Assembly (NCBI GenBank): GCA_002104905.1
Contig: MCFE01000512.1
Location: 1-64,000 of the forward strand
DNA: 64,000 bases
Reading direction: 5' to 3'
DNA from: Basidiobolus meristosporus CBS 931.73
Lineage: Eukaryota > Fungi > Basidiobolomycota
Positions 11,231 to 33,950 of this stretch are shown here, one piece after another. The translations under genes and the position numbers were made by a program. Position 1 is the stretch's first letter. Each line of letters begins with the position of its first letter. A model generated the notes under the pieces. The model had not been told where the DNA came from. It saw nothing but the letters and a program-made list of their open reading frames with translations, and searched no databases.

Positions 11231-11340
11231 ATGCAACTCTCCATCACTTCATACATCGCCTCTACCCAATTGACCTCTATTGCACCAGATAAATCTTCAA
11301 GTCGGAACATTAACCGAGGGCTGTGTTGATTTGAAATTAT
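11231..11340 (+). pseudogene. A*-type signal-peptide relic (old A-like paralogue)
   Basis: AAAATG CAA CTC TCC ATC ACT... gives MQLSITSYIASTQLTSIAPDKSSS, resembling the A N-terminus. Homologous relics occur at 14276, about 18140, about 24340 and about 31590. Confidence 0.55.
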
Positions 11341-11406
11341 AGAGTCATAAGAGTAGTGATAGCCAAGGGTATCAATGTGTATTCATCATAAAATTATCAC
11401 AACTAT

Positions 11407-11750
11407 ATGGATGTGAATGAGGGCAAAGATGAAGGCGAAGGTGAGGACTCGATAGATGACACTTCAACTCAGCCAGAGTCATCCTACAACATGACAAACT
11501 GCAATATAGCAGATATGCAGCCAAGACAGGCCTTGTTGGACAGAGTGAACGCTCACTCATCCAGTGATGCTGATGCCCTGTCGAACTCCAATCAGTTTGA
11601 CCAAGCGCAGGTTATCGACCAAACCCTCTATCAGCCTAAGCAGCAACAGCCCCTAGATCATCATCACCCAGCCAGCCACCCGTAGCCATGTTGGACGCCA
11701 GAAGTACAAGAGATCTGCGCATAAGTGCTTCAAGAACAGATACATTGAAT
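11407..11750 (+). pseudogene. Family-A pseudogene, 5'-truncated and frameshifted
   Basis: ORF 11407-11685 starts at MDVNEG with no signal peptide. An extra base after QQQP shifts the tail out of frame. Confidence 0.85.
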
Positions 11751-12084
11751 AAATAAATATGACATTTGGCCACCTTAGATTAATATGAAACATCATCAGC
11801 CGTGATTCGTGAATTACCATACTACAGCTGAAATATCACAAGTATATATGTATATATTGGTGTATGTATCAGTTTATTTATCGTACATTAATCATGTAGA
11901 CTACGCGATATCAATGTGATGGAGTCGACAATATTAGAGAGAATGCTGATTTTCAATCTGATAAAGTGTGAGTTCATCAAAGTTAACTAACTATTGCTAC
12001 CATCAATGTTGTAACCATGTTATAATGGTTCCCATGCTATATATTCCCGAGTGTACTTGGCAATGGACTTAGTAGTTCTCAAAG

Positions 12085-12663
12085 ATGCGCGCATTCATTG
12101 TATCCTTGACCTTGGGCCTTGCTTCTCTTCAGGCCACCATTGCTGCTCCAGTCCCATGCTCCGAATCATGCAACCGTGAGCATAGAAGAGTCCGTTATCG
12201 CAGGTATTCATGCTCGGACCAAGCAAGCAACTGCTACCAGCAAGTCCAGGTTCAGCCCACTGTTGAAACGCCAAACGTCCAAGTGCCATTGTTGCGTCAG
12301 GTGTTCACCACCGTGACCAGAAAGCATGACAATCTGAACACTGCCAACGCCAACAGTGACAAGAGTCTCGATGTTCAGTTTCAAGCAGGCCCTAGCCTCG
12401 AAGTAGAAGGCTCAGCCAGCGCATCCGAGTACGCCAAACAGAAGGGTGCTGAACACTCCGAAGATGGCTCTGGTTACCCTATTGTTGTGGTTCAGCCTGC
12501 ACAAGATGAGACATACTCCACACCAGTAGTGGACACCCAATGCATCGAAGGATGCTCTGACCAAGATACACAGTACTCTGAGCCCATGGTAGATGTTCAA
12601 TGTGGTGATGACTGTGCTAATCAGGACCCACAGTATACCGAGCCCATGGAAGACACTCAATGA
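12085..12663 (+). CDS. Family-B secreted protein, 192 aa
   Basis: Signal-like MRAFIVSLTLGLASLQATIA, 8 Cys, HRRVRYRRY block, two acidic 20-aa C-terminal repeats. AATAAA downstream. Confidence 0.9.
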   Translation: MRAFIVSLTLGLASLQATIAAPVPCSESCNREHRRVRYRRYSCSDQASNCYQQVQVQPTVETPNVQVPLLRQVFTTVTRKHDNLNTANANSDKSLDVQFQAGPSLEVEGSASASEYAKQKGAEHSEDGSGYPIVVVQPAQDETYSTPVVDTQCIEGCSDQDTQYSEPMVDVQCGDDCANQDPQYTEPMEDTQ

Positions 12664-13294
12664 CCCGACGACTGCACTTGAGCCCAAATGCAATAAAGAT
12701 CCATTATCCATTTTATTTTTCGCCTCATATGTGAGCAGAAATATAGCCATTAACAGCATGGGAGCAAAGAGCGTTTGACAAACTTAAAACCAAGCCAATT
12801 TCCACACTTCACTCTGATGATCCGAAGTCCAGTCACCAATTCAGGAGAAGGGTATACTATATTATTGAACTAACTTGAGTAAAATCAATCCTATGTTGAT
12901 AGCTATTCTATGTGGCCAATCATCAAACAATCCACAACTACTCACCACTATTCCATTTTAGTAACTTATTCGTTATTATTCGCAATTCAGAGGGGACACA
13001 ACCAAAATAATTCACACTGTCATGTGAGGAGTTGTTAGATGTTCTGAGCATAAAGTTTTAACGTCGAATATGCCTGACCGAAAGGCACTGCGTATCCATA
13101 TCTATGTTTGGTTATTTCGGTTGATGCTCATTCCACTCATCCCTGTGGTCACATCTACGCTGTTTTTTCCTGATATCAGTTGGTGTAATCTTATTTGCAG
13201 AAGAAATGTGCGTGTTTTATAGCATGCAGAAATAGCGATTATATGATAGGATTTATTATGAATGCCAAACCAATGTTTACATGATCCGATTGAG

Positions 13295-13717
13295 TCAAAA
13301 GCGGCCGCTGTATCTACTTCTACGGTAGCGTCGTTGACAACGTTTGCACGATGGCTGATCGTCGTCGTCACTCGAGTCTTGAGTATCATCCTCATCGGGA
13401 GTAATTGATTGTACATATGTCGGTGCAGATGGTTGGTACAATGTCTGATCTACTTGCTGCACTTGCTCAAATTGATTCTGGTTGGAAAGTGCCTCAGCGT
13501 TCTGTGCAGAATTAGTCTGAGCGTTGTCCAACAATGGATAGGCGTTCGGGGACTCCAGTTGATAGTATATTGGTGTATATGACACTAATGGTTCTTTGTC
13601 GAAGTCCACTGGGACACCCTGGTCTACTTGCTGGTTGTCATATGTTGCAATGGGCGATGCATAAGATGCACCGAATAGGAATACTAAGGCGGATAGAATG
13701 CGGAAAGTGCGTTGCAT
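13295..13717 (-). CDS. Family-C secreted protein, 140 aa
   Basis: The start conserved in all copies is the ATG of MQRTFRILSALVFLFGASYA; the ORF track uses an upstream non-ATG start. N/Q core, D-rich block, CKRC, R/Y tail. Confidence 0.9.
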   Translation of the reverse strand: MQRTFRILSALVFLFGASYASPIATYDNQQVDQGVPVDFDKEPLVSYTPIYYQLESPNAYPLLDNAQTNSAQNAEALSNQNQFEQVQQVDQTLYQPSAPTYVQSITPDEDDTQDSSDDDDQPSCKRCQRRYRRSRYSGRF

Positions 13718-13754
13718 GTTGGCGCCTGATGACATACTGGAAGGCAAACAGTTG

Positions 13755-13762
13755 CTTTTATG
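13755..13762 (-). promoter_or_regulatory. TATA-like box of C genes (CATAAAAG)
   Basis: About 40 nt upstream of the ATG and similar in the intact C copies. Confidence 0.45.
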
Positions 13763-14275
13763 TATGGTTTGCTAGATTCATCAGCGATCATCAGCAACCA
13801 AACCCAGTTTACTAAATTATGAAGCAAAGGTGAGTAAAGTTAATCAGCATTTCACTTTCATTGCAATGATCAGTGAATAGGTGTTGATTAACACCGTAAT
13901 CCCGGCGACCAATCACTTCAGTACATCAAGAAAAATAAATAAACATTCGTCTTCAATTTTGAGCTTGCTATACCACTTTGGAATGACAAACGCGGTAGTG
14001 AAGGGACAAACTAAAATGACTCATACTACGCCTTTTCAAGCTATGGCTTGAAGTGAGCACACAGGAATCGCGTCGTTCTTGCGTAGTTCTCGATTTCATC
14101 GTCGAAGGCCACCAAGCTACTCTGATTATATAGTACCCTGCAGCTATTTTTATGAGTATGTTGGGATTATGAACGAATTAACATCTTCACCGGCCATCAG
14201 TCGATAGTATACTGAACTAAATTTACGATTTAGCATAATGCATTGCATCGACCACCTCAAGTCCGCTTAGCAAAA

Positions 14276-14345
14276 ATGTAACTCGCCATCACTTTGCTGG
14301 CTTCATATATCACCTCTATCCAAGCGATCTCTATTGCAGCAGATG
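14276..14345 (+). pseudogene. A*-type signal-peptide relic
   Basis: ATG TAA CTC GCC ATC ACT TTG CTG GCT TCA TAT ATC... gives M*LAITLLASYITSIQAISIAADE; codon 2 is CAA-to-TAA. Confidence 0.6.
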
Positions 14346-14478
14346 AACCTAGAGTTGCATTGATTTGAGATCGTAGATTCATAGGGATAGTGATTGCTAA
14401 GGGTATTAATGTGTACCTATCACTATGACTATCAGCATGTGGCTTTCCAAATCTTCAATGATGTAGCTACTTTTCCTT

Positions 14479-14760
14479 TTGGCCATCGTTGTTGCTCCAA
14501 TTCCACGCTCCGAATCATGCAATCGCAACCATAAAAGAGTGCATTATCGTAGTTCGTCATGCTCCGATCGAGCAAGTAACTGCCACCAGCAAGCCCGAGC
14601 TCTGCCAACTGTAGAGACTTCGAATGCCCAAGTACGATTGTACGTTGAAGGATGCGTTATCAGGATATACAAAACACTGAGCCCATGGAAGTTGCTCAGT
14701 TTGGCAATGACTGTGCTAATCAGGACTTACTGTATGCTGACTTTATGGACGACACTCAAC
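14479..14760 (+). pseudogene. B*-type relic (internally deleted old B paralogue)
   Basis: AIVVAPIPRSESCNRNHKRVHYRSSSCSDRASNCHQQ... is joined by a deletion to remnants of the C-terminal repeats. Confidence 0.8.
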
Positions 14761-14956
14761 GTACCGACAACTGCACTTAATTCAATAAATCTCGATTATC
14801 CATATCATTTGCTCTTAAAGCCAATCTAACTTGATTGCTAATAGCTAAACCAGGTAGTTAGTTGATGGGCAACAAAAGCAGGACATAGCATGTGAATTCC
14901 TGGCCTCAAGTGAGTCTGATACAGGGTGTAGTATAGTAGACTATGCCAAATACCAC

Positions 14957-14963
14957 TATAAAG
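14957..14963 (+). promoter_or_regulatory. TATA box of A genes (TATAAAG)
   Basis: About 40 nt upstream of AAAATG and conserved before the A copies at 24852 and 32104. Confidence 0.5.
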
Positions 14964-14997
14964 TGAGCTTACGACTGGTTTTACGATATTCATCAAA

Positions 14998-15552
14998 ATG
15001 CAGCTTACTCTCACTTTGCTCGCTTTGTACTTTGCTTCTATCCATGCATTCCCTGCCACAGAAGATACCTCTTCTCAGGTGAGCTACGGTGACAATTTGT
15101 GCGGGGAGCAAGTAAGTCCTTGCTACCCAGAAACTCAATCGCCTGCAGATGACTATCAGCCGGAACAGGACGAGGGTGATCACTATATGGATGAGAATGG
15201 GGGTGAAGATGAAGGCGAAGGTGAAGATTCAATGGATGGCACTACAACTCAGCCAGAATCATCCTACGAGATGCCCAACTTCAATATAGCCGACCTGCAA
15301 CCAAGACAGGCCTTGTTGGACAGAGTGAACGCTCACTCATCCAGTGATGCTGATGCTCTGTCGAATTCTAATCAGTTTGACCAAGCGCAGGTTATCGACC
15401 AAACCCTCTATCAGCCTAAGCAGCAACAGCCCCAGATCATTATCACTCAGCCAGCCACCCATAGCTATGGTGGAGGCCAGAAGAAGTACAAGAGGTCTGT
15501 ACATAAGTACTTCAAGATCAGATATTTCAGTGGGAATCGATACATTGATTAA
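14998..15552 (+). CDS. Family-A secreted protein, 184 aa
   Basis: Signal-like MQLTLTLLALYFASIHA, Cys pair, D/E/G-rich block, N/Q core, K/Y/R tail. AATAAA directly at the stop. Confidence 0.9.
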   Translation: MQLTLTLLALYFASIHAFPATEDTSSQVSYGDNLCGEQVSPCYPETQSPADDYQPEQDEGDHYMDENGGEDEGEGEDSMDGTTTQPESSYEMPNFNIADLQPRQALLDRVNAHSSSDADALSNSNQFDQAQVIDQTLYQPKQQQPQIIITQPATHSYGGGQKKYKRSVHKYFKIRYFSGNRYID

Positions 15553-15833
15553 ATAAACATTTCATTTGGTCACCCTATATTAAAATGAAACATCATCAGC
15601 CGTGGTTCGTGAATTACCGCACTACTGCTGAAATATCAAAAGCATATGCGAATATATTAGGGTATATATTGGTGTATTTATCAGTGTATTTATCGTGTTG
15701 TAACCAAATAAAGTGCGCGATATCAATGCGATTGAGCCGATGATGGCAGAGCGAATGCTAATTTTCAATCTGATAAAGTTAACTAACTATTGCTACCATC
15801 AACGTTGTAACCATGTTATAATGATTCCCATGC

Positions 15834-15840
15834 TATATAT
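15834..15840 (+). promoter_or_regulatory. TATA-like box of B genes (TATATAT)
   Basis: GCTATATATTCC lies about 45 nt upstream of AAAGATG in every B copy. Confidence 0.5.
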
Positions 15841-15880
15841 TCCCGAGTGTACTTGGCAATGAACTCAGCAGTTCTCAAAG

Positions 15881-16459
15881 ATGCGTACATTCATTGTATC
15901 ATTGATCTTGGGCCTTGCCTCTCTTCAAGCCGCCGTTGCTGCTCCAGTCCCATGCTCCGAATCATGCAACCGTGAGCATAGAAGAGTCCGTTATCGCAGG
16001 TATTCATGCTCAGACCAAGCAAGCAACTGCTACCAGCAATCCCAGGTTCAGTCCACTGTTGAAACGCCAAACGTCCAAGTGCCATTGTTGCGTCAGGTGT
16101 TCACCACCGTGACCAGAAAGCATGACAATCTGAACGCTGCCAACGCCAATAGTGACAAGAGTCTCGATGTTCAGTTTCAAGCAGGCCCTAGTCTCGAAGT
16201 AGAAGGTTCAGCTAGCGCATCCGAGTACGCCAAACAGAAGGGTACTGAACACTCAGACAATGGCGCTGATTACCCCACTGTTATGATTCAGCCTGCACAA
16301 GATGAGACATACTCCACACCAGTAGTGGTCACCCAATGCATCGAAGGGTGCTCAGACCAAGATACACAGTACACTGAGCCCATGGAAGATGTTCAATGTG
16401 GCGATAACTGTGCTAATCAGGACCCACAGTATACTGAGCCCATGGAAGACACTCAATGA
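15881..16459 (+). CDS. Family-B secreted protein, 192 aa
   Basis: Intact paralogue of 12085-12663. Confidence 0.9.
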   Translation: MRTFIVSLILGLASLQAAVAAPVPCSESCNREHRRVRYRRYSCSDQASNCYQQSQVQSTVETPNVQVPLLRQVFTTVTRKHDNLNAANANSDKSLDVQFQAGPSLEVEGSASASEYAKQKGTEHSDNGADYPTVMIQPAQDETYSTPVVVTQCIEGCSDQDTQYTEPMEDVQCGDNCANQDPQYTEPMEDTQ

Positions 16460-17152
16460 ACCAACGACTGCACTTGAGCCCAAATCCAATAAAATTTCAT
16501 TATTCATGTTATTTTTCGCCTCGTATGGGATAGCAGAAATATAGCCGTTACCATCAAGAAAATAAGGGTATTTTACAAACTCAACACCATGCCAATTTCC
16601 GCACTTCCCTCTGATAACCCGAAGTCCAGCGACCAATCCAGGAAAAGGGTAAGAAACGTCTTGAAGTACTGCTTGAAGGTCATGGGTAGCTTGTTCAATA
16701 GGTTTTATGTGGGTTTAGTCAATATGGAAATCGGGTCTCCTTGAGCATATCACCATTCCAAGAAGTTCTAGCATGAGTCCGCTATTATAGAGGGTAGGAT
16801 ACATGATAAATAAGGAGAATTCGGTGTGTGTCAAATCCAATAGTCTGGTGCTTTTGACTTATATTCACTGGTACCAGCAGAGTGAGAAAGTACCAAAGCC
16901 CAACTATTGCTTACTACCATTACCAGCACATAACTAATACGCACTACAGACGAATGCTTCTTATTGTAATTGAGAAAATTGGTGCTTGATCGGCTCTTTC
17001 CCTTACATTAATATCGGTTAAATACTCGCCGTTGTTCCACCCATCCCTGTGGTCATGTCTCTTTTGTGACTTTTTTTCCTGGTATTAATTGTCAGAAACT
17101 GGAGTGATGTCGGTTATATATTACATTATCTTATTTATTAAACCTATTCATA

Positions 17153-17587
17153 TCAATAGCTGTCTCTGAATCTACGCCTACGGTAGCGTTGTTGACAACG
17201 TTTACACGATGGTTGATCGTCGTCGTCACTCGAGTCCTCAGTGTCATCCTCGTTGGGTGTAATTGATTGCACATATGTCGGCGCAGATGGTTGGTACAAT
17301 GTTTGATCTACTTGCTGCACCTGGTCGTACTGATTCTGGTTGGAAAGTGCCTGAGCGTTCTGTGCAGAATTCATCTTCACATTGTCCAACAATGGATAGG
17401 TGTCTGGAGACTCTAGTTGATAGTATGTTGGTGTATATGGCACTAATGGTTCATTGTCGGCATTGCCGCCAAAGTCCACTGGGATACCCTGGTTTACTTG
17501 CTGGTTGTCATACGTTGCAATGGGCGATGCGTAAGATGCACCGAATAGGAATACTAAGGCGGATAGAATGCGTAAAGTGCGTTGCAT
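17153..17587 (-). CDS. Family-C secreted protein, 144 aa
   Basis: Intact from the ATG of MQRTLRILS. Confidence 0.9.
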   Translation of the reverse strand: MQRTLRILSALVFLFGASYASPIATYDNQQVNQGIPVDFGGNADNEPLVPYTPTYYQLESPDTYPLLDNVKMNSAQNAQALSNQNQYDQVQQVDQTLYQPSAPTYVQSITPNEDDTEDSSDDDDQPSCKRCQQRYRRRRFRDSY

Positions 17588-18139
17588 GTTGGCGCTTGAT
17601 GACACACTGGAAGGTAAACAGTTGCTTTTATGTATGGTTTGCTAGATTCATCAGCGATCATCAGCAACCAAGCCCAGTTTACTAAATTATGAAGCAAAGG
17701 TGAGTAAAGTTAATCAGCATTTCACTTTCATTGCACTGATCAGTGAGTAAGAGTTGATTAACATCGTAATCCAGGCGACCAATCACTTCAGTACATGAAG
17801 AAAAACAAATAAACATTCGTCTTCAATTCTGGGCTTGCTATACCACTTTGGAATGACATACGCGGTAGTGAAGGGACAAACTAAAATGACTCATACTACG
17901 CCTTTTCAAGCTATGGCTTGAAGTGAGCACACAGGAATGGCTTCATTCTTACGTAGTTCTTGATTTCATAGTCGTAGAACGCTAGGCTACTCTGGTTTTA
18001 TAACAACCTGTAACAATCTTTGTGAGTGTTATGGGATCATGACTGAATTAATATCTTCACCAGCCTTCAGTCGATAGTATACTGAGTTGAATTTACGATG
18101 TAGCATTATGCATTGTACCAATTAGCTTAGCTTAGCAAA

Positions 18140-18625
18140 AATGTAACTCACCATCACCTCTGTCCAAGTGATCTTCCAGTGTAGCAGACGAATCTTCGAG
18201 TTGTGTTGATCTGAAACTGAAGAGCCGTAAGAATAGTGATTGTTAAGGGTATTAATGTGTATTTATCACAGCACTTCAACTGCTAGTTTCTAATGCCCCG
18301 ACCGAGCAAGTGACTGTTAACAGCAAGTCCAAGTTCTGCATACTGTTGAAACGTCGAATGTCCAAGTGCCATTATTATGTCAAGTGTTCACCACTGTTAC
18401 CAAAAAACATGGCAATCTGAGTACTGCTAACGCTAATAGGGAAAAGAGTCTTAATGCCAAGCTGGCCCTAGCCTCGAAGTAGAAGGTTCAGCCAGCGCAT
18501 CCGAGTACGCCAAACTGAAGAGTGCTGAGCAATCAGACGATGGCTCTAATTTCCCATTGTTGTGACTTAGCTTGCACAAGATGAGACATACACTACACCA
18601 GTAGTAGACACCCAATGCGTTGAAG
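18140..18625 (+). pseudogene. A* and B relics
   Basis: AAAATGTAACTC... relic followed by stop-containing B sequence (VETSNVQVPLLCQVFTTVTKKHGNLSTANAN; SASEYAK). The full A gene is deleted from this unit. Confidence 0.7.
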
Positions 18626-18984
18626 GATGCGCTGATCAAGATACTGAAAGGAATACAAGAGATCGGCTCAGATATTCTAGTGGAAATAGACACAAGGAAC
18701 ATCATTTCACTTGACCACCTTATATTAAAATGAAACATCAGCATTGATTCGTAAATCACTATACTACAGCTGGAATATCAAAAGCATATGTGCATTTATT
18801 GGTGTATTTATCAGTGTATTTATCCTCCTGTAATCATGCAAACTACGCGATGATGGTAGACAGAATGCTAATCTGATCAAAGTTAACTAACTATTGCTAC
18901 CATCAATGTTAAAACCATATTATACTGGTTCCCATGCTATATATTCCCGAGCGTACTTGGCAATGAACTCAGCAGTTCTCAAAG

Positions 18985-19563
18985 ATGCGTACATTCATTG
19001 TATCCTTGATCTTGGGCCTTGCCTCTCTTCAAGCCGCCGTTGCTGCTCCAGTCCCATGCTCCGAATCATGCAACCGCGAGCATAGAAGAGTCCGTTATCG
19101 CAGGTATTCATGCTCGGACCAAGCAAGCAACTGCTACCAGCAAGTCCAGGTTCAGCCCACTGTTGAAACGCCAAACGTCCAAGCGCCATTGTTGCGTCAG
19201 GTGTTCACCACCGTGACCAGAAAGCATGACAATCTGAACACTGCCAACGCCAATAGTGACAAGAGTCTCGATGTTCAGTTTCAAGCAGGCCCTAGTCTCG
19301 AAGTAGAAGGCTCAGCCAGCGCATCCGAGTACACCAAACAGAAGGGTGCTGAACACTCAGACGATGGCTCTGGTTACCCCATTGTTATGGTTCAGCCTGC
19401 GCAAGATGAGACATACTCCACACCAGTAGTGGACACCCAATGCATCGAAGGATGCTCTGACCAAGATACACAGTACACTGAGCCCATGGAAGATGTTCAA
19501 TGTGGCGATGACTGTGCTAATCAGGACTCACAGTATACTGAGCCCATGGAAGACACTCAATGA
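18985..19563 (+). CDS. Family-B secreted protein, 192 aa
   Basis: Intact paralogue. Confidence 0.9.
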   Translation: MRTFIVSLILGLASLQAAVAAPVPCSESCNREHRRVRYRRYSCSDQASNCYQQVQVQPTVETPNVQAPLLRQVFTTVTRKHDNLNTANANSDKSLDVQFQAGPSLEVEGSASASEYTKQKGAEHSDDGSGYPIVMVQPAQDETYSTPVVDTQCIEGCSDQDTQYTEPMEDVQCGDDCANQDSQYTEPMEDTQ

Positions 19564-20206
19564 ACCAACGACTGCACTTGAGCCCAAATCCAATAAAGTT
19601 TCATTATTCATGTTATTTTTCGTCTCATATGTGATAGCAGAAATATAGCCATTACCAGCATGGGAACAAGAGCATTTGACAAACTCAACACCACGCCAAT
19701 TTCTTCCCTCTGATGACCCGAAGTCCAGCTACCAATTCAGGAGAAGAGTAAGAAGCTGGTTAAGCTTGGCTATGCACGTGTTTAAGTACTGCTCGTAGGT
19801 ATTGGGTGGCTTATTTAATAAGCTCAACCCGGGCCTAGTCAATATGGAGATAGGGCATCCTAGAGTGTATCGCTATCTCAAGAAGTCCAACTATTACTCA
19901 CTACCATGAGCGCACATATAACATGCACCACAGACGAGTGATTCTTATTATAATTGAGAAATTTAGCGCTTGATCGGCTCTTTCCCTTACTTCAATCTCT
20001 GTTGATACTCGCCATTATTTCACCCATCCCTGTGGGCACATCTCTTGTGTATCATATTTGAAAGCTTGTTTACAGAAGAATTGGGTGTACCTGATAGCCT
20101 ACATGGACAGGGACACTGGAGTAATATCGATTGTATGATACATTAACCTATTTATTATGCTGGGATCACAATAGTCATAAAATGTAGAAAGGCCAACAAC
20201 CTGTTC

Positions 20207-20637
20207 TCATCGATAGCTGTCTCTGTATCTACGTCTACGGTGGCGTCGTTGACAACGTTTACACGATGGCTGATCGTCATCATCACCAGAGTCTTGGTCT
20301 TCATCCTTGTCGGGAGTCAATGATTGCACATATGTCGACGCAGATGGTTGGTACAATGTCTGATCTATTTGCTGCATACTGATTCTGGTTGGGAAGTGCC
20401 TGAGCATTCTGTACGGAGTTAGTTTGAATATTGTTCAACAAGGGATAAGTAATTAGGGACTCTAGCTGGTAATCTGCCAGCGCATATGATATTAATGGTT
20501 CAGTCTCATAGTCCACTTGGACACCCTGGTCTACTTATTGATTGCCATAGGTAACAATAGGCGATGCATAGGATACACCGAATAGGAATACTAAGGTAGA
20601 TAAAATGCGTGGATAAAATTCGGAAATTACGTCGCAT
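20207..20637 (-). pseudogene. C*-subtype pseudogene
   Basis: ATG at 20637. A 13-nt insertion (ACGCATTTTATCT) in the signal-peptide region shifts the frame, and there is a second shift in the core. Confidence 0.8.
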
Positions 20638-23813: not shown

Positions 23814-24851
23814 GTTGGCTCCTGCTGACACACTGGAAGGCAAACAGTTACTTTTATGTATGATTTGCTAGATTCATCAGCGATCATCAGCAACCAAACC
23901 CAGTTTACTAAATTATGAAGCAGAGGGGAGTAAAGTTAATCAGCATTTCATTTTCATTGTAATGATCGATGAGTAAAAGCTGATTAACACCGTAATCCAA
24001 GCGACCAATCACTTCAATAAATAAACACTCTTCAATTCTGCGCCGCCGCACGATTTGGGAATGACATTAGCGGTTGTGAAGAGACAAACCAAAATGACTC
24101 ATACTACGCCTTTTCAAGCTATGGCTTGAGGTGAGCTCACAGGAATGGCTTCGTTCTTACGTAGTTCTTGATTTCATAGTCATAGAATTGTAACCTGCTC
24201 GGGTTATATAGCGACCTGTAGCTATTTTAATGCGTATTATGGGATTATGAATGAATTCATATTTTACCAGTCATCATTCGGTAGCATTCTGAGCTAGATT
24301 AACGATTTAACATCAAGCGTTGCATCAACCACCACAAGATGATACAGCGCCACTATCCAAGGGATCTCTAATGCCGCAGATGAACTTCAAGTCGAAACAT
24401 GAACCTAGATTTGCGTTGATTTCAAATTGTAGATTCATAGGAATAGTGGTTGCTAAGGGTATTAATGTGAATTTATCACTGCGACTATTCACATATGGCT
24501 TTCCAAATGCTCAATGACGTAGCTACTTTTTCTTTTGGCGGTCGTTGCTGCTTCAATACACTGTGCCCACGGAATATGCTCAGTGTTGTAATGATTGTGC
24601 TTAGCAGGACTCACCGACTGCAGACTTTATGGAGGACACTTAATGTACCGATAAGTGCACTTAATTCAATAAATCTCGATTATCCATATGAGCCCATATC
24701 TTCACAAGTACTTAGTGGAAAGTCAACCACGGCTGGACATGGCATGTGAATTCATGGCTTCAAGTGAGTCAGATATAGGATGCAGTATAATAGACTACGC
24801 CAAATACCACTATAAAGTGAGCTTACGACTAGTTTTACGCTATTCATTAAA

Positions 24852-25406
24852 ATGCAGCTTACTCTCGCTTTGTTTGCTTTGTACTTTGCTTCTATTCATG
24901 CATTACCCGCCACAGAAGATACCTCTTCTCAGGTTAGCAACGACAACAACTTGTGCGGCGAGCAAATAAGTCCTTGCTACCAAGAAACTCAATCGCCTGC
25001 ATATGACTATCAGCAGGAACAGGATGAGGGTGATAGCTATATGGATGAGAATGAGGGCGAAGATGAAGGAGAAGGTGTGGACTCAATGGATGGCACTACA
25101 ACTCAGCCAGAGTCATCCTACAACATGCCCAGCTTCAGTATAGCCGATATGCAACCAAGACAGGCCTTGTTGGACAGAGTGGACGCTCATTCATCCAGTG
25201 ATGCTGATGCTCTGTCGAACTCTAATCAGTTTGACCAAGCGCAGGTTATCGACCAAACCCTCTATCAGCCTAAGCAGCAACAGCCCCAAATCATCATCAC
25301 TCAGCCAGCCACCCGAAGCTATGGTGGAGGCCAGAAGAAGTACAAGAGGTCGGCACATAAGTACTTCAAGATCAGATATTTCAGTGGGAACAGATACATT
25401 GAATAA
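24852..25406 (+). CDS. Family-A secreted protein, 184 aa
   Basis: Intact, with signal peptide. Confidence 0.9.
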   Translation: MQLTLALFALYFASIHALPATEDTSSQVSNDNNLCGEQISPCYQETQSPAYDYQQEQDEGDSYMDENEGEDEGEGVDSMDGTTTQPESSYNMPSFSIADMQPRQALLDRVDAHSSSDADALSNSNQFDQAQVIDQTLYQPKQQQPQIIITQPATRSYGGGQKKYKRSAHKYFKIRYFSGNRYIE

Positions 25407-25753
25407 ATAAACATGTCATTTGGCCGCCTAATATTAATATGAAACATCATCAACCGTGATTCGTGAATTACCACACCAAAGCTGAAATTTTATCAAAAGC
25501 ATATGCGTATATATTGGTGTATTTATCAGTGTATTTATCAGTGTATTTATCGTGCTGTAACCATATAAACTACGCGATATCAATGCGATTGAGCCGATGA
25601 TGGTAGAGCAAATACTGCTTTTCAATCTGACAAAGTGTGAGTTCATCAAAGTTAACTAACTATTGTTGCCATCAGTGTTGTAACCGTGTTATAATGGTTC
25701 CCCTGCTATATATTCCCGAGGGAATTCAGCAATGTACCCAGTAGTTCTCAAAG

Positions 25754-26272
25754 ATGCGTACATTCATTGTATCATTGATCTTGGGCCTTGCCTCTCTTCA
25801 AGCCACCATTGCTGCTCCAGTCCCATGCTCCGAATCATGTAATCGTGAGCATAGAAGAGTCCGTTATCGCAGGTATTCATGCTCGGACCAAGCAAGCAAC
25901 TGCTACCAGCAAGTCCAGGTTCAGCCCACTGTTGAAACGCCAAACGTCCAAGTGCCATTGTTGCGTCAGGTGTTCACCACCGTGACCAGAAAGCATGACA
26001 ATCTGAACACTGCCAACGCCAACAGTGACAAGAGTCTCGATGTTCAGTTTCAAGCAGGCCCTAGCCTCGAGGTAGAGGGCTCAGCCAGCGCATCCGAGCA
26101 CGCCAAACAGAAGAGTGCTGAACACTCAGAAGATGGCTCTGGTTACCCCATTGTTATAGGTCAGCCTGCACAAGATGAGACATACTCCACACCAGTAGTG
26201 GACACCCAATGCATCGAAGGGTGCTCTGACCAAGATACACAGTACACTGAGCCCATGGAAGATGCTCAATGA
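25754..26272 (+). CDS. Family-B secreted protein, 172-aa variant
   Basis: Intact but lacks exactly one of the two 20-aa C-terminal repeats. Confidence 0.88.
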   Translation: MRTFIVSLILGLASLQATIAAPVPCSESCNREHRRVRYRRYSCSDQASNCYQQVQVQPTVETPNVQVPLLRQVFTTVTRKHDNLNTANANSDKSLDVQFQAGPSLEVEGSASASEHAKQKSAEHSEDGSGYPIVIGQPAQDETYSTPVVDTQCIEGCSDQDTQYTEPMEDAQ

Positions 26273-26582
26273 ACCAACGACTGCACTTGAGCCCAAATCC
26301 AATAAAGCACCATTATTCATTTTATTTTTCGTCTCATATGTGATAGCAGAGATATAGCCATTAACAGCATGGGAACAAGAGCGTTTGACAAACTCAACAC
26401 CACGCCAATCTCCATATTTCCCTCTGATGACCCGAAGTCCAGCCACCAATTGAGGAGAGGGGTAAGAAACTGGTAAAGCTTGGCTATGCACGTCTTTAAG
26501 TCCTGCTTGGAGGTAGTGGGTGGCTCATTTAATAAGCTCAACGAGGGCTTAGTCAATATGGAGATCGGACATCCTAGAGTGT

Positions 26583-26911
26583 GGCTGACCGTCATCGTCA
26601 CTCAAGTCTTGGTCTTCATCCTCGTGGGGAGTAAATGGTTACACATATGTCGACGTAGATGGTTGGAAAGTGCCTGAGCATTCTGTGCGGAGTTAGCTTA
26701 AACATTGTCCAACAACGATAGGTGACTGGGAACTCTAGCTGATAATCTGTCGGTGCATATGGAATCGATGGTTCAGTCTCATAGTCCACTTGGACACCCA
26801 GGTCTACTTATTGATTGCCATATGTAGCAATGGGCGATGCATTGGATACACCGGATAGGAATACCAATGTTGGACAAAATGCGTGGATAAAATGCGGAAA
26901 TAAGGTTGCAT
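26583..26911 (-). pseudogene. C*-subtype pseudogene, 3'-truncated
   Basis: ATG at 26911, frameshifting insertion at the same place as in 20207-20637, tail deleted. Confidence 0.75.
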
Positions 26912-27383
26912 ATTGGCACTTAGTTACACACTGGAATACAAAAAGTTGCTTTTGTTTTTATCAACAATCATCAGCAGCCAAAGCTCAGTTGATAGCTATT
27001 CTATGTGGCCAATCATCAATAAAAACAATCCACAGCCAATTGAACCTATGTATCATCGATCTACGTATTTCATTACCTATACCATCATCCATTTATTGCT
27101 ATCCACGATTGCTCACCACTATTTCATTTTAGTAGTTTGTTCAATATTGCTCGCAAATTGTAGGGTACAAAACCACACTATTGTTTAAGGGTTCATTGCC
27201 AGAATGTTCATGATGCTCATTCCACTCATCCCAGTGGTCACGTCTCCGCTGTTTCTTCCGGATATCAATTGTTATAATCTTGTTTGTAGAAGAAATGTGG
27301 GTGTTTTATAGCTTGCAGAAATAGCGATTATATGATGGGATTTATTATGAATGCCAAACTAGTGTTTACATGATCTGATTGAA

Positions 27384-27818
27384 TCAAGAGCTGCCTCTGT
27401 ATCCACGTCTACGGTAGCGTCGTTGACAACGTTTGCATGATGGCTGATCGTCGTCGTCACTCGAGTCTTGAGTGTCATCCTCGTCGGGAGTAAACGGTTG
27501 CACATATGTCGGTGCAGATGGTTGGTACAATGTTTGATCTACTTGCTGCACTTGCTCAAACTGATTCTGGTTGGAAAGTGCCTGAGCGTTCTGTGCAGAG
27601 TTCGTCTGAGCGTTGTTCAACAATGGATAGGCGTTTGGGGACTCTAGTTGATAGTATGTTGGTGCATATGACACTAATGGTTCATTGTCGGTGTTGCCAC
27701 CAAAGTCCACCGGGATGCCCTGGTCTATTTGCTGGTTGTCATACGTTGCGATGGGTGATGCATAAGATACACCAAATAGGAATACAAAGGCGGATAGGAT
27801 GCGGAAAGTGCGTTGCAT
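27384..27818 (-). CDS. Family-C secreted protein, 144 aa
   Basis: Intact. Confidence 0.9.
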   Translation of the reverse strand: MQRTFRILSAFVFLFGVSYASPIATYDNQQIDQGIPVDFGGNTDNEPLVSYAPTYYQLESPNAYPLLNNAQTNSAQNAQALSNQNQFEQVQQVDQTLYQPSAPTYVQPFTPDEDDTQDSSDDDDQPSCKRCQRRYRRRGYRGSS

Positions 27819-28108
27819 GTTGGCGCTTGATGGCACACTGGAAGGTAAACAGTTGCATTTATGTATGGTTTGCTAGATTCATCAGCGATCATCAGCAACC
27901 AAACCCCGTTTACTAAATTATGAAGCAAAGGTGAGTAAAGTTAATCACCATTTCACTTTCATTGCAATGATCAGTGAATAAGAGTTGATTAACACCGTAA
28001 TTCAGGCGACCAATCACTTCAGTACATCAAGAAAAATAAATCAACATTTCTCTTCAATTCTGGGCGTGCTATACCACTTTGGTATGACAGGACGAGGGTG
28101 ATCGCTAT

Positions 28109-28462
28109 ATGGATGAGAATGAGGGCGAAGGTGAGGACTCGATGGATGACACTTCAACTCAGCCAGAGTCATCCTACGACATGCCAAACTTCAATATAGC
28201 CGACATGCAACCAAGACAAGCCCTATTGGACAGAGTGAACGCTCACTCATCCAGTGATGCTGATGCCCTGTCGAACTCTAATCAGTTTGACCAAGCGCAG
28301 GTAGTCGATCAAACCTTCTATCAGCCTAAGCAGCAACAGCCACGGATCATCATTACCCAGCCAGCCACCCGTAGCTATGGTGGAGGCCAGAAGAAGTACA
28401 AGAGGTCGGCACATAAGTACTTCAAGATCAGATATTTCAGTGGGAATCGATACATTGAATAA
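28109..28462 (+). pseudogene. Family-A copy lacking promoter and signal peptide
   Basis: Same deletion junction as 21823-21825, here at 28087-28089. Confidence 0.8.
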
Positions 28463-28806
28463 ATAAACATGTCATTTGGCCACCCTATATTAATATGAAA
28501 CATCATCAGCCGTGGTTCGTGAATTACCACACTACTGCTGAAATATCAAAAGCATATGCGTATATATTAGGGTATATATTGGTGTATTTATCAGTGTATT
28601 TATCGTACTGTAACCATAGAAACTACGCGATATCAATGCGATTGAGCCGATGATGGTAGAGCGAATGCTGCTTTTCAATCTGACAAGGTGTGAGTTCATC
28701 AAAGTTAACTAACTATGGCTACCATCAGTGTTGTAACCATGTTATACTGGTTCCCATGCTATATATTCCTGAGTGTAATTAGCAATGTGCTCAGTAGTTC
28801 TCAAAG

Positions 28807-29385
28807 ATGCGTGCATTCATTTTATCATTGATCTTGGGCCTTGCCTCTCTTCAAGCCACCATTGCTGCTCCAGTCCCATGCTCCGAATCATGTAATCGTG
28901 AGCATAGAAGAGTACGTTATCGCAGGTATTCATGCTCGGACCAAGCAAGCAACTGCTACCAGCAAGTGCAGGTTCAGCCCACTGTTGAAACGCCAAACGT
29001 CCAAGTGCCACTGTTGCGTCAGGTGTTCACCACCGTGACCAGAAAGCATGACAATCTGAACACTGCCAACGCCAACAGTGACAAGAGTCTCGATGTTCAG
29101 TTTCAAGCAGGCCCTAGCCTGGAAGTAGAGGGTTCAGCCAGCGCATCCGAGTACGCCAAACAGAAGGGTGCTGAACACTCAGACGATGGCTCTGGTTACC
29201 CCATTGTTATGGTTCAGCCTGCGCAAGATGAGACATACTCCACACCAGTAGTGGACACCCAATGCATCGAAGGATGCTCTGACCAAGATACACAGTACAC
29301 TGAGCCCATGGAAGATGTTCAATGTGACGATAACTGTGCTGATCAGGACTCACAGTATTCTGAGCCCATGGAAGACACTCAATGA
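28807..29385 (+). CDS. Family-B secreted protein, 192 aa
   Basis: Intact. Confidence 0.9.
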   Translation: MRAFILSLILGLASLQATIAAPVPCSESCNREHRRVRYRRYSCSDQASNCYQQVQVQPTVETPNVQVPLLRQVFTTVTRKHDNLNTANANSDKSLDVQFQAGPSLEVEGSASASEYAKQKGAEHSDDGSGYPIVMVQPAQDETYSTPVVDTQCIEGCSDQDTQYTEPMEDVQCDDNCADQDSQYSEPMEDTQ

Positions 29386-29960: not shown

Positions 29961-30346
29961 TAGCTGTTTACACGATGGCTGATCGTCGTCGTCACTCGAG
30001 TCTTGGTCTTCATCCTCGTCGGGAGTAATTGATTGCACATATGTCGATGCAGATGATTGGTACAATGTCTGATCTCTTTGCTGCACCTGGCTATACTGAT
30101 TCTGGTTGGGAAGTGCCTGAGTATTCTGTACGGAATTAGTTTGAATATTGTTCAACAAGGGATGGGGACTCCAGCTGGTAGTCTGTCGGCGCATATGATA
30201 TCGATGGTTCAGTCTCATAGTCCACTTGAACACCCAGGTCCACCTATTGGTTGCCATATGTAGCAATAGGCGATGCATAGGATACACCGAATAGGAATAC
30301 CAAGGTGAATAAAATGCGTGGATAAAATTCGGAAATTACGTCGCAT
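29961..30346 (-). pseudogene. C*-subtype pseudogene
   Basis: ATG at 30346, the same signal-region insertion, further shifts, and a truncated tail. Confidence 0.75.
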
Positions 30347-30679
30347 ATTGGCTCTTGGTTGCTTTTGTGTTTATCTACGATGTATCATCCATTTATGTAG
30401 ATTGCCTGCCACTAGTCCATTTTAGTAGCTTATTCATTATTGTTCGCAAATTGGAGAGAACAAAACCAAAATGTTTGATGTGAGGAGTCATTGCTCATTC
30501 CACACATACCTGTGGTCACGTCTCCTCTGATGTCAGTTGGTTTAATCTTGATTGCAGAAGAAATGTGTGTGTTGGATAGATTACAGTAGCAGCGATTATT
30601 TCATAGGATTAATTATGAATGCCATATACGATAGGATTTATTATGAATGCCAAACTAGTGTTTACATGATCCGATTGAG

Positions 30680-31114: not shown

Positions 31115-32103
31115 GTTGGCTCTTGATGACACACTGGAAGGCAAACAGTTGCTTTTATGTATGGTTTGCTAGATTCATCAGCGATCATCAGCAACCAAAC
31201 CCCGTTTACTAAATTATGAAGCAGAGGGGAGTAAAGTTAATCAGCATTTCACTTTCATTGCAATGATCAGTGAATAGGTGTTGATTGAAACCGTAATCTA
31301 AGCGACCAATCACTTCAGTACATGAAGAAAAATAAATAAACATTCTTCAATTCTTTTAGAATGACATTAGCGGTTGTCAAGAGACAAACCAAAATGACTT
31401 GAAGTGAGCACACAGGAATGGCTTCGTTCTTACGTAGTTCTTGATTTCATAGTCGTAGAATGGGAACCTGTAGCTATATTAATGCGTATTATGGGATTAT
31501 GAATGAATTGATATTTTATCAGTCATCATTCGGTAGTATACTGAGCTAGATTTACGATTTAGCATTAAGCATTGCATCAACCACCACAAGATGATACAGC
31601 GCCTCTATCCAAGGGATCTCTATTGCCGCAGATGAACTTCAAGTCGAAACATGAGCCTAGATTTGCGTTGATTTCAATTTGTAGATTCGTAGGAATGGTG
31701 ATTACTAAGGATATTAATGTGTATTTGTCACCGCGACTATTAACATATGGCTTTCCAAATGCTCAATGATGTAGCTACTTTTTCTTTTGGCCGTCGTTGC
31801 TGATTCAATACACTGAGCCCATGGAATATGCTCAGTGCTGTAATGATTGTGCTTAGTAGGACTCACCGACTGCGGACTTTACGGACGACACTTAATGTAC
31901 CGGCAACTGCACTTAATTCAATGAATCTCGATTATCCATATGAGCCCATATCTTCACAAGTACTTAGTGGAAAGTCAACCACGGCTGGACATGGCATGTG
32001 AATTCATGGCTTCAAGTGAGTCAGATATAGGATGCAGTATAATAGACTACGCCAAATACCACTATAAAGTGAGCTTACGACTGGTTTTACGCTATTCATC
32101 AAA

Positions 32104-32658
32104 ATGCAGCTTACTCTCGCTTTGTTCGCTTTGTACTTTGCATCTATCCATGCATTACCCGCCACAGAAGATACCTCTTCTCAGGTTAGCAACGACAGCA
32201 ACTTGTGCGGGGAGCAAGTAAGTCCTTGCTACCAAGAAACTCAATCGCCTGCATACGACTATCAGCCGGAACAGGACGAGGGTGATAGCTATATGGATGA
32301 GAATGAGGGCGAAGATGAAGGCGAAGGTGCAGACTCAATGGATGAAGTTTCAACTCAGCCAGAGTCATCCTACAACATGCCCAGCTTCAATATAGCCGAT
32401 ATGCAACCAAGACAGGCCTTGTTGGACAGAGTGAGCGCTCACTCATCCAGTGATGCTGATGCTCTGTCGAACTCTAATCAGTTTGACCAAGCGCAGGTTG
32501 TTGACCAAACCCTCTATCAACCTAAGAGGCAGCAGCCCCAGATCATCATCACTCAGCCAGCCGCCCGTAGCTATGGTGGAGGCCGGAAGAAGTACAAGAG
32601 ATCGGCGCATAAGTACTTCAAGTTCAGATATACCAGTGGGAACCAATACATCGATTAA
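32104..32658 (+). CDS. Family-A secreted protein, 184 aa
   Basis: Intact, with signal peptide. Confidence 0.9.
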   Translation: MQLTLALFALYFASIHALPATEDTSSQVSNDSNLCGEQVSPCYQETQSPAYDYQPEQDEGDSYMDENEGEDEGEGADSMDEVSTQPESSYNMPSFNIADMQPRQALLDRVSAHSSSDADALSNSNQFDQAQVVDQTLYQPKRQQPQIIITQPAARSYGGGRKKYKRSAHKYFKFRYTSGNQYID

Positions 32659-32946
32659 ATAAACATTTCAATTGACCACCTTATATTAATATGAAACATC
32701 ATCAGCCGTGATTCGCGAATTACCACACTACAGCTGAAATATCAAAAGCATATGTGTATATGTTGGTGTATTTATCGTACTGCAATCATGTAAACCACAC
32801 AATATCAATGCAATTGAGCCGATGATGGTGGAGAGATTGCTAATTTGAGATCTGATCAAAGTTAACTAACTATTGCTACCATCAATGTTGTAACCATGCT
32901 ATATATTCCCGAGGGAATTCAGCAATGAACTCAGTAGTTCTCAAAG

Positions 32947-33284
32947 ATGCGTACATTCATTGATCTTGGGCCTTGCTTCTCTTCAAGCCATCATTGCTGT
33001 TCCAGTCCCATGCTCCAAATCATGCAATCGTGAGCATAGAAGAGTCCGTTATCACAGGTATTCATGCTCGGACCAAGCAAGCAACTGCTACCAGCAAGTC
33101 TGCCAAAGCCAACAGTGACAAGAGTCTCAATGCTCAGTTTCAAGCAGGCCCTAGCCTCGAAGTAGAAGGCTCAGCCAGTGCATCCGAGTATGCCAAACAG
33201 AAGAGTGCTGAACACTCAGAAGATGGCACCAATTACCCTATTGTTATGGCACAGCCTGCACAAGATGAGACATACTCCACACCA
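32947..33284 (+). pseudogene. Family-B pseudogene
   Basis: An 8-nt deletion after MRTFI shifts the frame, an internal deletion removes half of the core, and the 3' end is truncated. Confidence 0.85.
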
Positions 33285-33653
33285 TATGGAAATCGGGTCT
33301 CTATTCCAAGAAGCTATTATAGAATGCAAGGAGAATTTGGTGCGTGTCAAATCCAGTAATCTGGTCCTTTTGACTCACACTCATTGGTACCAGCAGAGCG
33401 AGAAAATACGAAAGCCCAACTATTGCTCACTACCATTACCAGCACATGACTAATATGCATTCTTATTATAATTGTGGAAATTGGTGCCTGATCGGCTCTT
33501 TCCATTACTTCAATCTCTGTTGACCACCCATCTTTGTGGTCATGTGACTTTTTCCTGGTGTTAATTGTCAGAGACTGGTTACATAAATAGGGAAAATGGA
33601 GTGATGTTGGTCATATATTACATTATCTTATTTATCACACAATAGTATTAACC

Positions 33654-33950
33654 CTACTCATATCTATAGCCATCTCTGTATCTACATCTACAGCAGTGTT
33701 GTTGACAACTTTGATTGTTGTTGTCACTTGAGTCTGGAGTAAACAATTGCACAAATGTGGGCATAGATGGTTGGTACAATGTTTGATCTACTTGGTGCAT
33801 CTGGTCATACTGATTCTTGTTGAAATGCGCCTGTGTGTTCTGTGCAGAATATGCCTGAGCATTGTCTAGCAATGGACAAGCATCTGGGGACTATAGTGGC
33901 AGTATGTTGGTGCATACAACATAAATGGTTTATTGCTGGCACTCAAGGAT
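33654..33950 (-). pseudogene. Family-C pseudogene (terminal, CpG-eroded)
   Basis: LDNAQAYSAQNTQAHFNKNQYDQMHQVDQTLYQPS...; 5' part lost. Confidence 0.8.

Follow-up and report, generated by a model that had tools for sequence, protein, structure and literature searches.

The stretch of DNA analysed here (the window) comprises 64,000 nucleotides of Basidiobolus meristosporus CBS 931.73. Between 11.4 and 33.9 kb it carries a seven-unit array of three genes, designated A, B and C. Copies were counted from the ORF listing and by tblastn, with one A, one B and one C copy as queries (Table 1). The intact A genes (184 aa) and B genes (192 aa, with one copy of 172 aa) lie on the forward strand, and the intact C genes (140-144 aa, counted from the first ATG) lie on the reverse strand. 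An earlier note on this DNA had reported about seven repeats with intact copies of A (3), B (6) and C (6), and our counts agreed. The order along the window is A'BC / B'ABC / B'BC'C / A'BC / ABC'C / A'BC'C / AB'C', in which the ten broken copies (primed) are three A genes without the first ~56 codons, three B fragments and four C fragments. The orientations described before were also found: B and C converge, and C points away from the following A or A'. The units are 80-93% identical across 0.7-2.9 kb, which excludes chance, and the joint amplification of A, B and C was thereby confirmed. There are also higher-order repeats of 6.3 and 7.3 kb. By tblastn, the family reaches past the array, with a decayed A-B pair and B and C fragments at lower coordinates. 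The neighbourhood of the array is rich in transposons and satellites.

Table 1. Members of the A, B and C families along the window (positions in the window; primes denote broken copies).
Feature	Position	Strand	Evidence and remarks
Decayed A-B pair, second subtype (A174/B165-like), outside the array	2199..3177	+	tblastn A 42-184 (two frames) followed by B 1-120 (54%)
Decayed remnants of B (+, 9724-9909) and C (-, 10326-10577), outside the array	9724..10577		tblastn
A', without first ~56 codons (signal peptide), frame break near 3' end	11401..11746	+	tblastn A 62-145 and 145-177, two frames
B copy 1, intact, 192 aa	12085..12663	+	ORF; 90% identity to query B
C copy 1, intact, 140 aa from first ATG	13295..13717	-	ORF; alignment A3
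B' fragment, internal deletion, B core absent	14467..14759	+	tblastn B 12-69 and 160-192 only
A, intact, 184 aa	14998..15552	+	ORF; 184-aa public models P0028, P0029, P0031 at 85-94% identity
B copy 2, intact, 192 aa	15881..16459	+	ORF; P0001 at 94% identity
C copy 2, intact, 144 aa	17153..17587	-	ORF; alignment A3
B' fragment, three frames	18288..18648	+	tblastn B 41-163, pieces in three frames
B copy 3, intact, 192 aa	18985..19563	+	ORF
C' fragment, frame-broken, 67-80% identity	20258..20667	-	tblastn C, three pieces
C copy 3, intact, 144 aa	21120..21554	-	ORF; P0057 at 97% identity
A', no signal peptide, open from internal Met to normal stop, 121 aa	21824..22210	+	ORF, tblastn; dN/dS 0.17 vs A' 28088..28462
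B copy 4, intact, 192 aa	22555..23133	+	ORF
C copy 4, intact, 144 aa	23379..23813	-	ORF
A, intact, 184 aa	24852..25406	+	ORF
B copy 5, 172 aa, stops one C-terminal Cys repeat early	25754..26272	+	ORF; tblastn similarity continues beyond stop
C' fragment, frame-broken	26573..26941	-	tblastn C, four pieces
C copy 5, intact, 144 aa	27384..27818	-	ORF
A', no signal peptide, open from internal Met, 117 aa	28088..28462	+	ORF, tblastn, dN/dS
B copy 6, intact, 192 aa	28807..29385	+	ORF
C' fragment, frame-broken	29967..30355	-	tblastn
C copy 6, intact, 144 aa	30680..31114	-	ORF
A, intact, 184 aa	32104..32658	+	ORF
B' fragment, internal deletion	32957..33284	+	tblastn B 7-51 and 86-147
C' fragment closing the array, 61% identity	33675..33896	-	tblastn

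The promoter and poly(A) signals ascribed to the genes were recovered. In all six B copies, TATATAT lies at -47 and AATAAA at +29. The C copies carry AATAAA at +14 or +38; in A, TATAAAG lies near -42 and AATAAA overlaps the stop codon. No 8-mer was conserved upstream of all three families, in what is a weak test of shared promoters. The signal-peptide-like N-termini proposed for A, B and C were likewise evident on inspection of alignments A1-A3. The putative leaders have a charged start, a hydrophobic run of 12-15 residues and a small residue at -1; position -3 is a small residue in B and C and Ile in A. A search of sequencing runs listed no RNA run for the A-B-C unit. Four runs contained gene B; they either covered intergenic DNA too or were tiny, indicating that they are DNA or uninformative.

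The view that the unit encodes three different proteins was not upheld. A core of 38-45 aa is common to A and C (hhalign probability 98%, E 2e-14; trimmed cores, E 1.7e-16). In addition, the N-termini of A and B are related (probability 85%, E 6e-6) and share the leader and a C-x6-C-Y-Q loop, whose two cysteines hardly vary among A, B and the two-core proteins described below. A single core common to all three families was considered and rejected for B: the B core aligned with the A/C core at an hhalign E of 0.24-0.5 (probability <1%), and its gapless profile score gave p = 0.21 against column shuffles, whereas the A-C relationship was confirmed. The superfamily is built of a few short conserved modules: the leader with the C-x6-C-Y-Q loop (A and B), the B core (~45 aa), the A/C core (~40 aa; A and C), and a short Arg/Lys-Tyr basic patch, which A and C carry at the C-terminus and B close to the N-terminus. 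The spacers that join them are acidic or Met-rich and vary freely. The cores are nearly invariant between species, although the A proteins are otherwise only ~40% identical.

Both cores occur in single proteins in the sister species Basidiobolus ranarum. P0055 is an uninterrupted ORF of 966 nt that encodes the leader, the loop, the B core, a spacer, the A core and the A tail. P0027, an uninterrupted ORF of 813 nt, encodes the B core, a spacer, a C-type core, an acidic run and a CxxC tail. P0137, P0139, P0141 and P0147 have the same layouts as P0055 or P0027, and the B core came first in all five complete B. ranarum two-core proteins from a motif scan (P0027, P0055, P0137, P0139 and P0141). These fusion-type ORFs lend indirect support to the view that A, B and C may work together. 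The difference between the two species may reflect gene splitting or gene fusion, in either direction. Two sorts of apparent fusion were set aside: P0013, a candidate natural B-A fusion, is a spliced model (1072 nt for 319 aa), and those B. meristosporus models in which the A core precedes the B core appear to be adjacent genes run together.

We defined the superfamily by possession of the B core, the A/C core or both, and by restriction to the genus; the cores are seen in alignments A1-A4. A, B and C matched only hypothetical proteins of B. meristosporus (K493DRAFT) and B. ranarum (K7432). When 1.84 billion representatives were searched with a profile HMM covering all modules, only 43 proteins reached E<=1e-3, and every hit that was checked came from Basidiobolus (17 known from the A, B and C searches, and ten looked up among the other 26). 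On the hits checked, the superfamily is restricted to this genus. It exceeds 100 genes per genome. Clusters at 90%, all from a single genome, comprise 32 members for B192, 23 for B165, 22 for A174, 8 for A184 and 12 for C144.

A conserved A-B-C triplet, as the earlier note had envisaged, was not found: contigs of B. ranarum carry tandem arrays of A only and of B only, and within B. meristosporus many dispersed A-B pairs lack C. The adjacency of A to B is retained in a subtype that has diverged to 55-60% identity. This A174-B165 pair belongs to units, 4-5.5 kb long, that share 93-94% identity from scaffold to scaffold, and no terminal repeats or transposase indicative of carriage by a mobile element were found in these units. 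Identical proteins appear under two accessions on different scaffolds. Furthermore, the nearest relative of each array gene lies on another scaffold (94-97% identity), whereas neighbours are only 85-93% identical, which indicates that whole arrays were copied. The intact copies evolve under purifying selection, with dN/dS values over 33 pairs of 0.29 (A), 0.31 (B) and 0.23 (C). The reported B:C ratio near 1:1 stands as a count (6 intact copies each), but not as a selected stoichiometry, because B and C belong to one duplication unit that copies broken genes too.

The proteins themselves are acidic (pI ~4.1-4.4 for A, B and C) and enriched in Gln, Asn, Asp, Glu and Tyr. Their charge blocks are segregated, with one Arg/Lys-Tyr patch each; in C, a block of -9 adjoins a block of +7. 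A and C contain 2 Cys and B contains 8, as CxxxC and Cx6C pairs with no CC doublets. Of KR and RR sites, A has one KR and B two RR in one patch, whereas KR/RR/RRR in C occur only within the last 16 residues. AlphaFold2 (AF2) gave a pLDDT of 51 and a pTM of 0.10 for A. For B the pLDDT was 38, staying below 50 from residue 15 to the end at residue 192, and the tail had no helices. A and B are therefore predicted to be intrinsically disordered; the models come from shallow alignments (16-21 rows) and are still compatible with folding upon assembly.

The absence of any known domain was borne out, as no Pfam family reached its threshold for A, B or C, and no PDB entry matched the family at E<=10. 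The nearest neighbours by language model were secreted, disordered structural proteins (cuticle GYR/YLP proteins, caseins, prisilkin, a hyphal wall protein and oomycete M96). Their scores of 0.59-0.70 lie in the range reached by shuffled proteins, and we treat them as a lead rather than as relatives. The UniRef names CBM1 (fungal cellulose-binding), C2H2, SCP and glucanase CBD, which some members carry, were discarded, since no such Pfam domain was found at E<=5 in P0009, P0010, P0058, P0079, P0110 or P0112. The PIR repeat (PF00399; Q-[IV]-x-D-G-Q-[IV]-Q) gave no Pfam match at E<=1, and the A/C core reads D-Q-T instead of D-G-Q. The eight-Cys hydrophobin pattern C-CC-C-C-CC-C was absent from A, B and C. 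Alpha-hairpinin-type peptides form a CX3C-Xn-CX3C helical hairpin, a helix-loop-helix stapled by two disulfides; the B tail (C-x3-C, ~15 residues, C-x3-C) matches them in motif only.

Given these observations, we propose that the array represents, in split and co-amplified form, a two-core secreted protein specific to the genus, and we put the probability of this reading at about 0.5; the product of the array would probably be a bulk extracellular material. The tandem genes all belong to a single superfamily of small secreted proteins that is specific to Basidiobolus, and decayed copies lie at the edges of the array. The B core and the A- or C-type core, joined in single ORFs in B. ranarum, are distributed over separate neighbouring genes in B. 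meristosporus. Unequal crossing-over and block duplication would have copied the genes together, within arrays first and then as whole arrays across many scaffolds. Outside the cell, the proteins may associate via the invariant cores and via acidic bodies with basic Tyr-rich patches, to give a matrix, coat or adhesive. The logic would be like that of casein (SCPP) and insect cuticle-protein clusters, in which adjacent genes for small, secreted, disordered proteins arose by duplication and module shuffling, and the products are made in bulk and associate extracellularly. Both systems show charge-block and Tyr/Gln-rich compositions. Unlike those clusters, the array belongs to a fungus and shows no detected sequence homology to them, and its bulk expression and co-assembly are putative. 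The M96 mating-specific array of Phytophthora is another large tandem array of near-identical genes for small secreted proteins under concerted evolution. However, M96 is a single gene type in another kingdom with no detectable homology; it ranked third among the language-model neighbours of B, with a chance-level score of 0.66.

Alternatively, unequal crossing-over and block duplication, acting on a genome that is repeat-rich and highly duplicated, might have produced the amplification and the B:C ratio as neutral by-products. In that case the genes may still work, but their copy number and linkage would carry no functional message. Since broken A', B' and C' copies have been duplicated along with the units, much of the amplification may indeed be neutral. 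The higher-order repeats, the closer relatives on other scaffolds and the identical proteins under two accessions all fit this account. As an explanation of the whole pattern we nevertheless consider it possible and, on balance, unlikely. ORFs are intact in 15 of the 25 copies with dN/dS of 0.2-0.3, amplification recurs independently in the A-only and B-only arrays of B. ranarum, and A-to-B adjacency outlasts divergence to 55-60% identity.

The genes could also encode pro-peptide precursors, in which a Kex2-type protease cuts at RR/KR, the acidic body is the pro-piece and short basic Cys- or Tyr-rich peptides are active. The conserved, basic and aromatic C-terminal peptide of A (~19 residues), for example, could have an antimicrobial or signalling use in gut or dung. 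Each protein has one dibasic-rich patch beside an acidic block, and the K-K-Y-K-[RK] motif of A and the tail after it are conserved in both species. The B165 subfamily matched Pfam Myticin-prepro (PF10690) at E 0.0025, and C matched ProSAAS at E 0.004. Like the mussel myticin pre-proprotein, which has a signal peptide, a Cys-rich cationic peptide and an anionic extension, B165 combines a signal peptide, a Cys-/Arg-rich segment and an anionic extension. B. meristosporus was also the richest genome in a survey of fungal Kex2-processed repeat proteins (KEPs), with 43 (PMC7329392), and A, B and C resemble KEPs in the signal peptide (by inspection), the dibasic motifs and the lineage-specific families. 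We think this reading rather doubtful. Both Pfam matches fall under the gathering score (18 vs 28.5 bits; 17.6 vs 23). For PF10690, four members (three B165 and one 178-aa relative) scored 14.5-18.4 bits and the B192 type of the window had no match; the Cys-/Arg-rich segment has 4 Cys rather than 8, and B. ranarum shows no conservation of the basic segment. The dibasic sites of B are missing from B. ranarum B (P0019) and from two-core P0055, and cutting the C tail would give fragments of just 3-6 residues. Moreover, conservation is strongest in the neutral cores, not in the basic patches. These are single cores of 40-45 aa, unlike the tandem KR/RR-flanked core peptides of KEPs, and no dibasic sites lie between the C-terminal Cys repeats of B.

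A co-delivered effector set, directed against an animal host or rival gut microbes and amplified in an arms race, seems very improbable to us. Clusters of lineage-specific secreted effector genes occur in Ustilago maydis and similar fungi, and the array resembles these as a tandem set of orphan secreted-protein genes without known domains. The proteins are small, secreted-looking and lineage-specific, and their large arrays occupy a region rich in transposons and satellites. The fungus is associated with the gut and is an opportunistic pathogen (PMC9391592). However, selection on the copies is purifying rather than diversifying, the cores hardly change between species, and more than 100 near-identical copies per genome point to dosage rather than diversification. 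AF2 gave no fold for A and B, and no known effector motif was found. We know of no host-induced expression of the A, B and C genes.

Returning to the split two-core protein, we offer a more specific guess, which we hold loosely and think will probably prove wrong. A, B and C may be parts of a previously unknown, genus-specific multi-component extracellular material, for example the coat of spores or zygospores, or the capilliconidial adhesive. Acidic disordered proteins would self-assemble through the two invariant short cores and through charge-block or cation-pi contacts, and B. ranarum would make the material in unsplit form, from its two-core proteins. The unusual life cycle of Basidiobolus features ballistic spores and adhesive capilliconidia; the fungus passes through insects and herptile guts and occasionally infects humans. 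To our knowledge, almost nothing is known of its surface and secreted biology at the molecular level. A genus-restricted superfamily of more than 100 genes, under selection and with products predicted to be secreted and disordered, makes a strong candidate for a material or interaction factor peculiar to this lineage. The occurrence of split forms in one species and fused forms in the other amounts to a natural experiment for asking if the two cores act jointly. If the co-assembly is true, the family would provide a new and simple system for protein materials made of short conserved motifs on disordered spacers.

A, B and C, three small intronless gene families at ~11.4-33.9 kb of the window, constitute a real, selected, genus-specific modular family that is putatively secreted, predicted to be disordered and co-amplified as neighbouring genes. 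ORF listing and tblastn recovered the intact copies counted in the earlier note (3 A, 6 B and 6 C). The orientations it described, B and C convergent and C divergent from the next A, were reproduced, and the TATA-like boxes and AATAAA signals lie where it had placed them. With broken or fragmentary copies written as A', B' and C', the order is A'BC, B'ABC, B'BC'C, A'BC, ABC'C, A'BC'C and AB'C'. The units are 80-93% identical, with higher-order blocks recurring 6.3 and 7.3 kb apart. The satellite at the window end has higher-order periods of 122, 183, 208 and ~300 bp and a strongly negative GC skew.

Members of the A, B and C families and repeats flanking the array
Feature	Position	Strand	Description	Basis
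Intact A (n=3)		+	184 aa each	ORF listing, tblastn
Intact B (n=6)		+	five of 192 aa, one of 172 aa	ORF listing, tblastn
Intact C (n=6)		-	140-144 aa, counted from first ATG	ORF listing, tblastn
Broken copies			3 A without first ~56 codons, 3 B fragments, 4 C fragments	tblastn
A' copies	11401-11746, 21824-22210, 28088-28462		the 3 broken A copies above; leader and signal peptide missing	
Further decayed A/B/C-family members	2199-3177, 9724-10577		outside main array	
Ty3/gypsy chromovirus remnant	36333-40816		directly downstream of array; zinc knuckle, aspartyl protease, RT, RNase H, integrase, chromodomain	
Transposase remnant ORF	46636-47163		DDE_Tnp_4 (PIF/Harbinger-type) domain, E 5e-23	
Satellite	~51133-64000		61-bp units, at least 12.8 kb, reaching window end	

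Selection was assessed by the Nei-Gojobori method in 33 pairs of intact copies. The dN/dS was 0.29 for A (dS 0.21), 0.31 for B (dS 0.10) and 0.23 for C (dS 0.24), and it was at most 0.53 in 32 of the 33 pairs; the outlier was one C pair, with a value of 0.85 at a dS of just 0.03. The intact A, B and C copies are genes under selection. Between B. meristosporus and B. ranarum, A is ~33-39% identical by pairwise BLAST and 41-44% identical in a multi-sequence alignment. A stretch of ~85 residues of A, comprising its core and tail, is almost invariant across the two species, and the B core is also nearly invariant. The mean dS among the B copies (12085-29385) was under half that of A or C in the same array, pointing to either gene conversion acting more often on B or tighter constraint on its codons.

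All A' copies have an identical breakpoint at codon ~57, where they abut the upstream region of C; they therefore lack the promoter-proximal leader and the signal peptide. Two of them (21824-22210 and 28088-28462) have nevertheless kept a frame that opens at an internal Met and reads through to the usual stop; their dN/dS is 0.17 to each other and 0.11-0.25 against intact A. Either these copies encode a functional non-secreted short form or they are kept clean by gene conversion from intact A. A'-like copies have public models of 114-121 aa.

The view that A, B and C are three different proteins did not hold. A and C have a common core of 38-45 residues (hhalign probability 98%, E 2e-14; E 1.7e-16 for the trimmed cores), and A and B have a common leader followed by a C-x6-C-Y-Q loop (probability 85%, E 6e-6), both cysteines of which are nearly invariant in the joint alignment. 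No similarity was detected between the B core and the A/C core by hhalign (E 0.24-0.5) or by a gapless profile test (p = 0.21).

Both cores occur within one chain in B. ranarum. In the public protein P0055, a leader and a loop very close to that of A precede the B core, which a Met/Glu-rich spacer links to the A core and then the A tail; the protein is encoded by an uninterrupted 966-nt ORF surrounded by housekeeping genes. P0027, from an uninterrupted 813-nt ORF, runs from the B core through a spacer to a C-type core, followed by an acidic run and then a CxxC tail. The P0055 layout recurs in P0137 and P0139, and the P0027 layout in P0141 and P0147; a motif scan picked out five complete two-core proteins in B. 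ranarum (P0027, P0055, P0137, P0139 and P0141), and the B core comes first in each. A, B and C are therefore modules of two types of two-core protein that stand as separate genes, and the separate and two-core forms may have arisen from one another by fission or by fusion. By the usual Rosetta-stone logic, the presence of both cores in one chain indirectly supports joint action of the modules. The B. meristosporus models with both cores, of which P0013 is spliced, have the reverse order; since this is the order of the genomic A-to-B adjacency, they look like merged neighbouring genes. Seven public B. meristosporus models (P0007, P0015, P0026, P0044, P0048, P0081 and P0082) splice A or A' to the next B, and may be real read-through transcripts or prediction artefacts.

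A profile of all modules, run against 1.84 billion representatives, matched only 43 proteins at E<=1e-3; 17 had already turned up with a Basidiobolus source, and of the remaining 26 the 10 that were looked up are all from Basidiobolus. No description of this protein family was found in the literature searched. In B. meristosporus, 90% clusters, named by family and length in aa, hold 32 (B192), 8 (A184) and 12 (C144) members for the window types and 23 (B165) and 22 (A174) for a second subtype, over many scaffolds. Identical proteins stand under two accessions in some cases. A conserved A-B-C triplet, for which the earlier note had proposed a search, was not borne out. By accession adjacency, A174-B165 pairs lie on at least nine B. 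meristosporus scaffolds, with no C beside them at both loci inspected; at other loci A still precedes B and the arrangement is otherwise variable. Three B. ranarum contigs carry, without triplets, five tandem B, about nine tandem A and five tandem A, respectively, and a protein search with C found no stand-alone C in this species. The nearest relative of each window gene is on another scaffold (94-97% identity), compared with 85-93% for neighbours in the array, indicating that whole arrays were duplicated after the units had diverged. The A174-B165 pair sits in a 4-5.5 kb unit that is 93-94% identical across scaffolds (L005 1-4006, L006 7796-13043 and L007 7796-13310) and that also repeats inside L006 with a 10-kb period. 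Block duplication could account for these copies, as could haplotypes left uncollapsed or a carrier element.

By inspection, signal-peptide-like N-termini are present in A, B and C, as had been claimed. With a pI of 4.1-4.4, the mature proteins are acidic, and Gln, Asn, Asp, Glu and Tyr are abundant in them. A single short Arg/Lys-Tyr patch lies at the C-terminal end of A and of C, and immediately follows the leader in B. The number of Cys is 2 in both A and C, against 8 in B. Charge is segregated, and in C a net -9 block immediately precedes a +7 block. No family reached Pfam thresholds, in agreement with the reported absence of a known domain, and the family profile matched no PDB sequence at E<=10. 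UniRef labels some members as CBM1, C2H2, SCP or glucanase CBD, labels that Pfam does not reproduce. AlphaFold2 with family alignments gave models with almost no secondary structure (A, pLDDT 51 and pTM 0.10; B, pLDDT 38), from which we read A and B as probably intrinsically disordered, the alignments behind the models being shallow. Met/Glu-rich spacers that contain short tandem repeats occur in P0137, P0139, P0138 and P0144, for example with a ~9-residue Met-rich unit present five times and a His/Lys/Trp unit, also in five copies; the spacers of window A differ in being Asp/Glu/Gly-rich. The composition of the spacers is thus free, and the cores are fixed.

The main alternative to a structural role outside the cell is that A, B and C are processed precursors. 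Dibasic patches adjoin acidic blocks, and Myticin-prepro and ProSAAS matched in Pfam, both below threshold; the B. meristosporus genome was the richest in a survey of Kex2-processed proteins (PMC7329392). However, B does not keep its dibasic sites across species and the strongest constraint is on the neutral cores, which weakens the precursor model, and we consider it unlikely. An effector role is less probable still: the genomic setting fits it, but the selection pattern does not. Part of the amplification is probably a neutral by-product of the duplication unit, since broken copies are propagated with it, and so is the B:C ratio near 1:1 that the earlier note had pointed out.

A search of sequencing runs listed no RNA run for the A-B-C unit; the runs covering the locus, compared over 5.5 kb, are DNA or too small to be informative. 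Two very small runs from one sample, X3 and X4, whose contigs add up to 0.5 and 1.1 million letters, contain one contig each of 300-350 nt that spans the 5' portion of a B paralogue (window 18960-19341), starting ~25 nt before the ATG in X3 and ~58 nt after it in X4. These contigs would fit a strongly expressed transcript as well as a DNA skim of such low coverage that only high-copy sequence assembles.

For the specific role, we tentatively propose, with a probability of about 35-40%, that A, B and C are secreted together in bulk. They would associate through their invariant cores and through contacts between the acidic body and the basic-Tyr patches, and the product would be an extracellular matrix, coat or adhesive.
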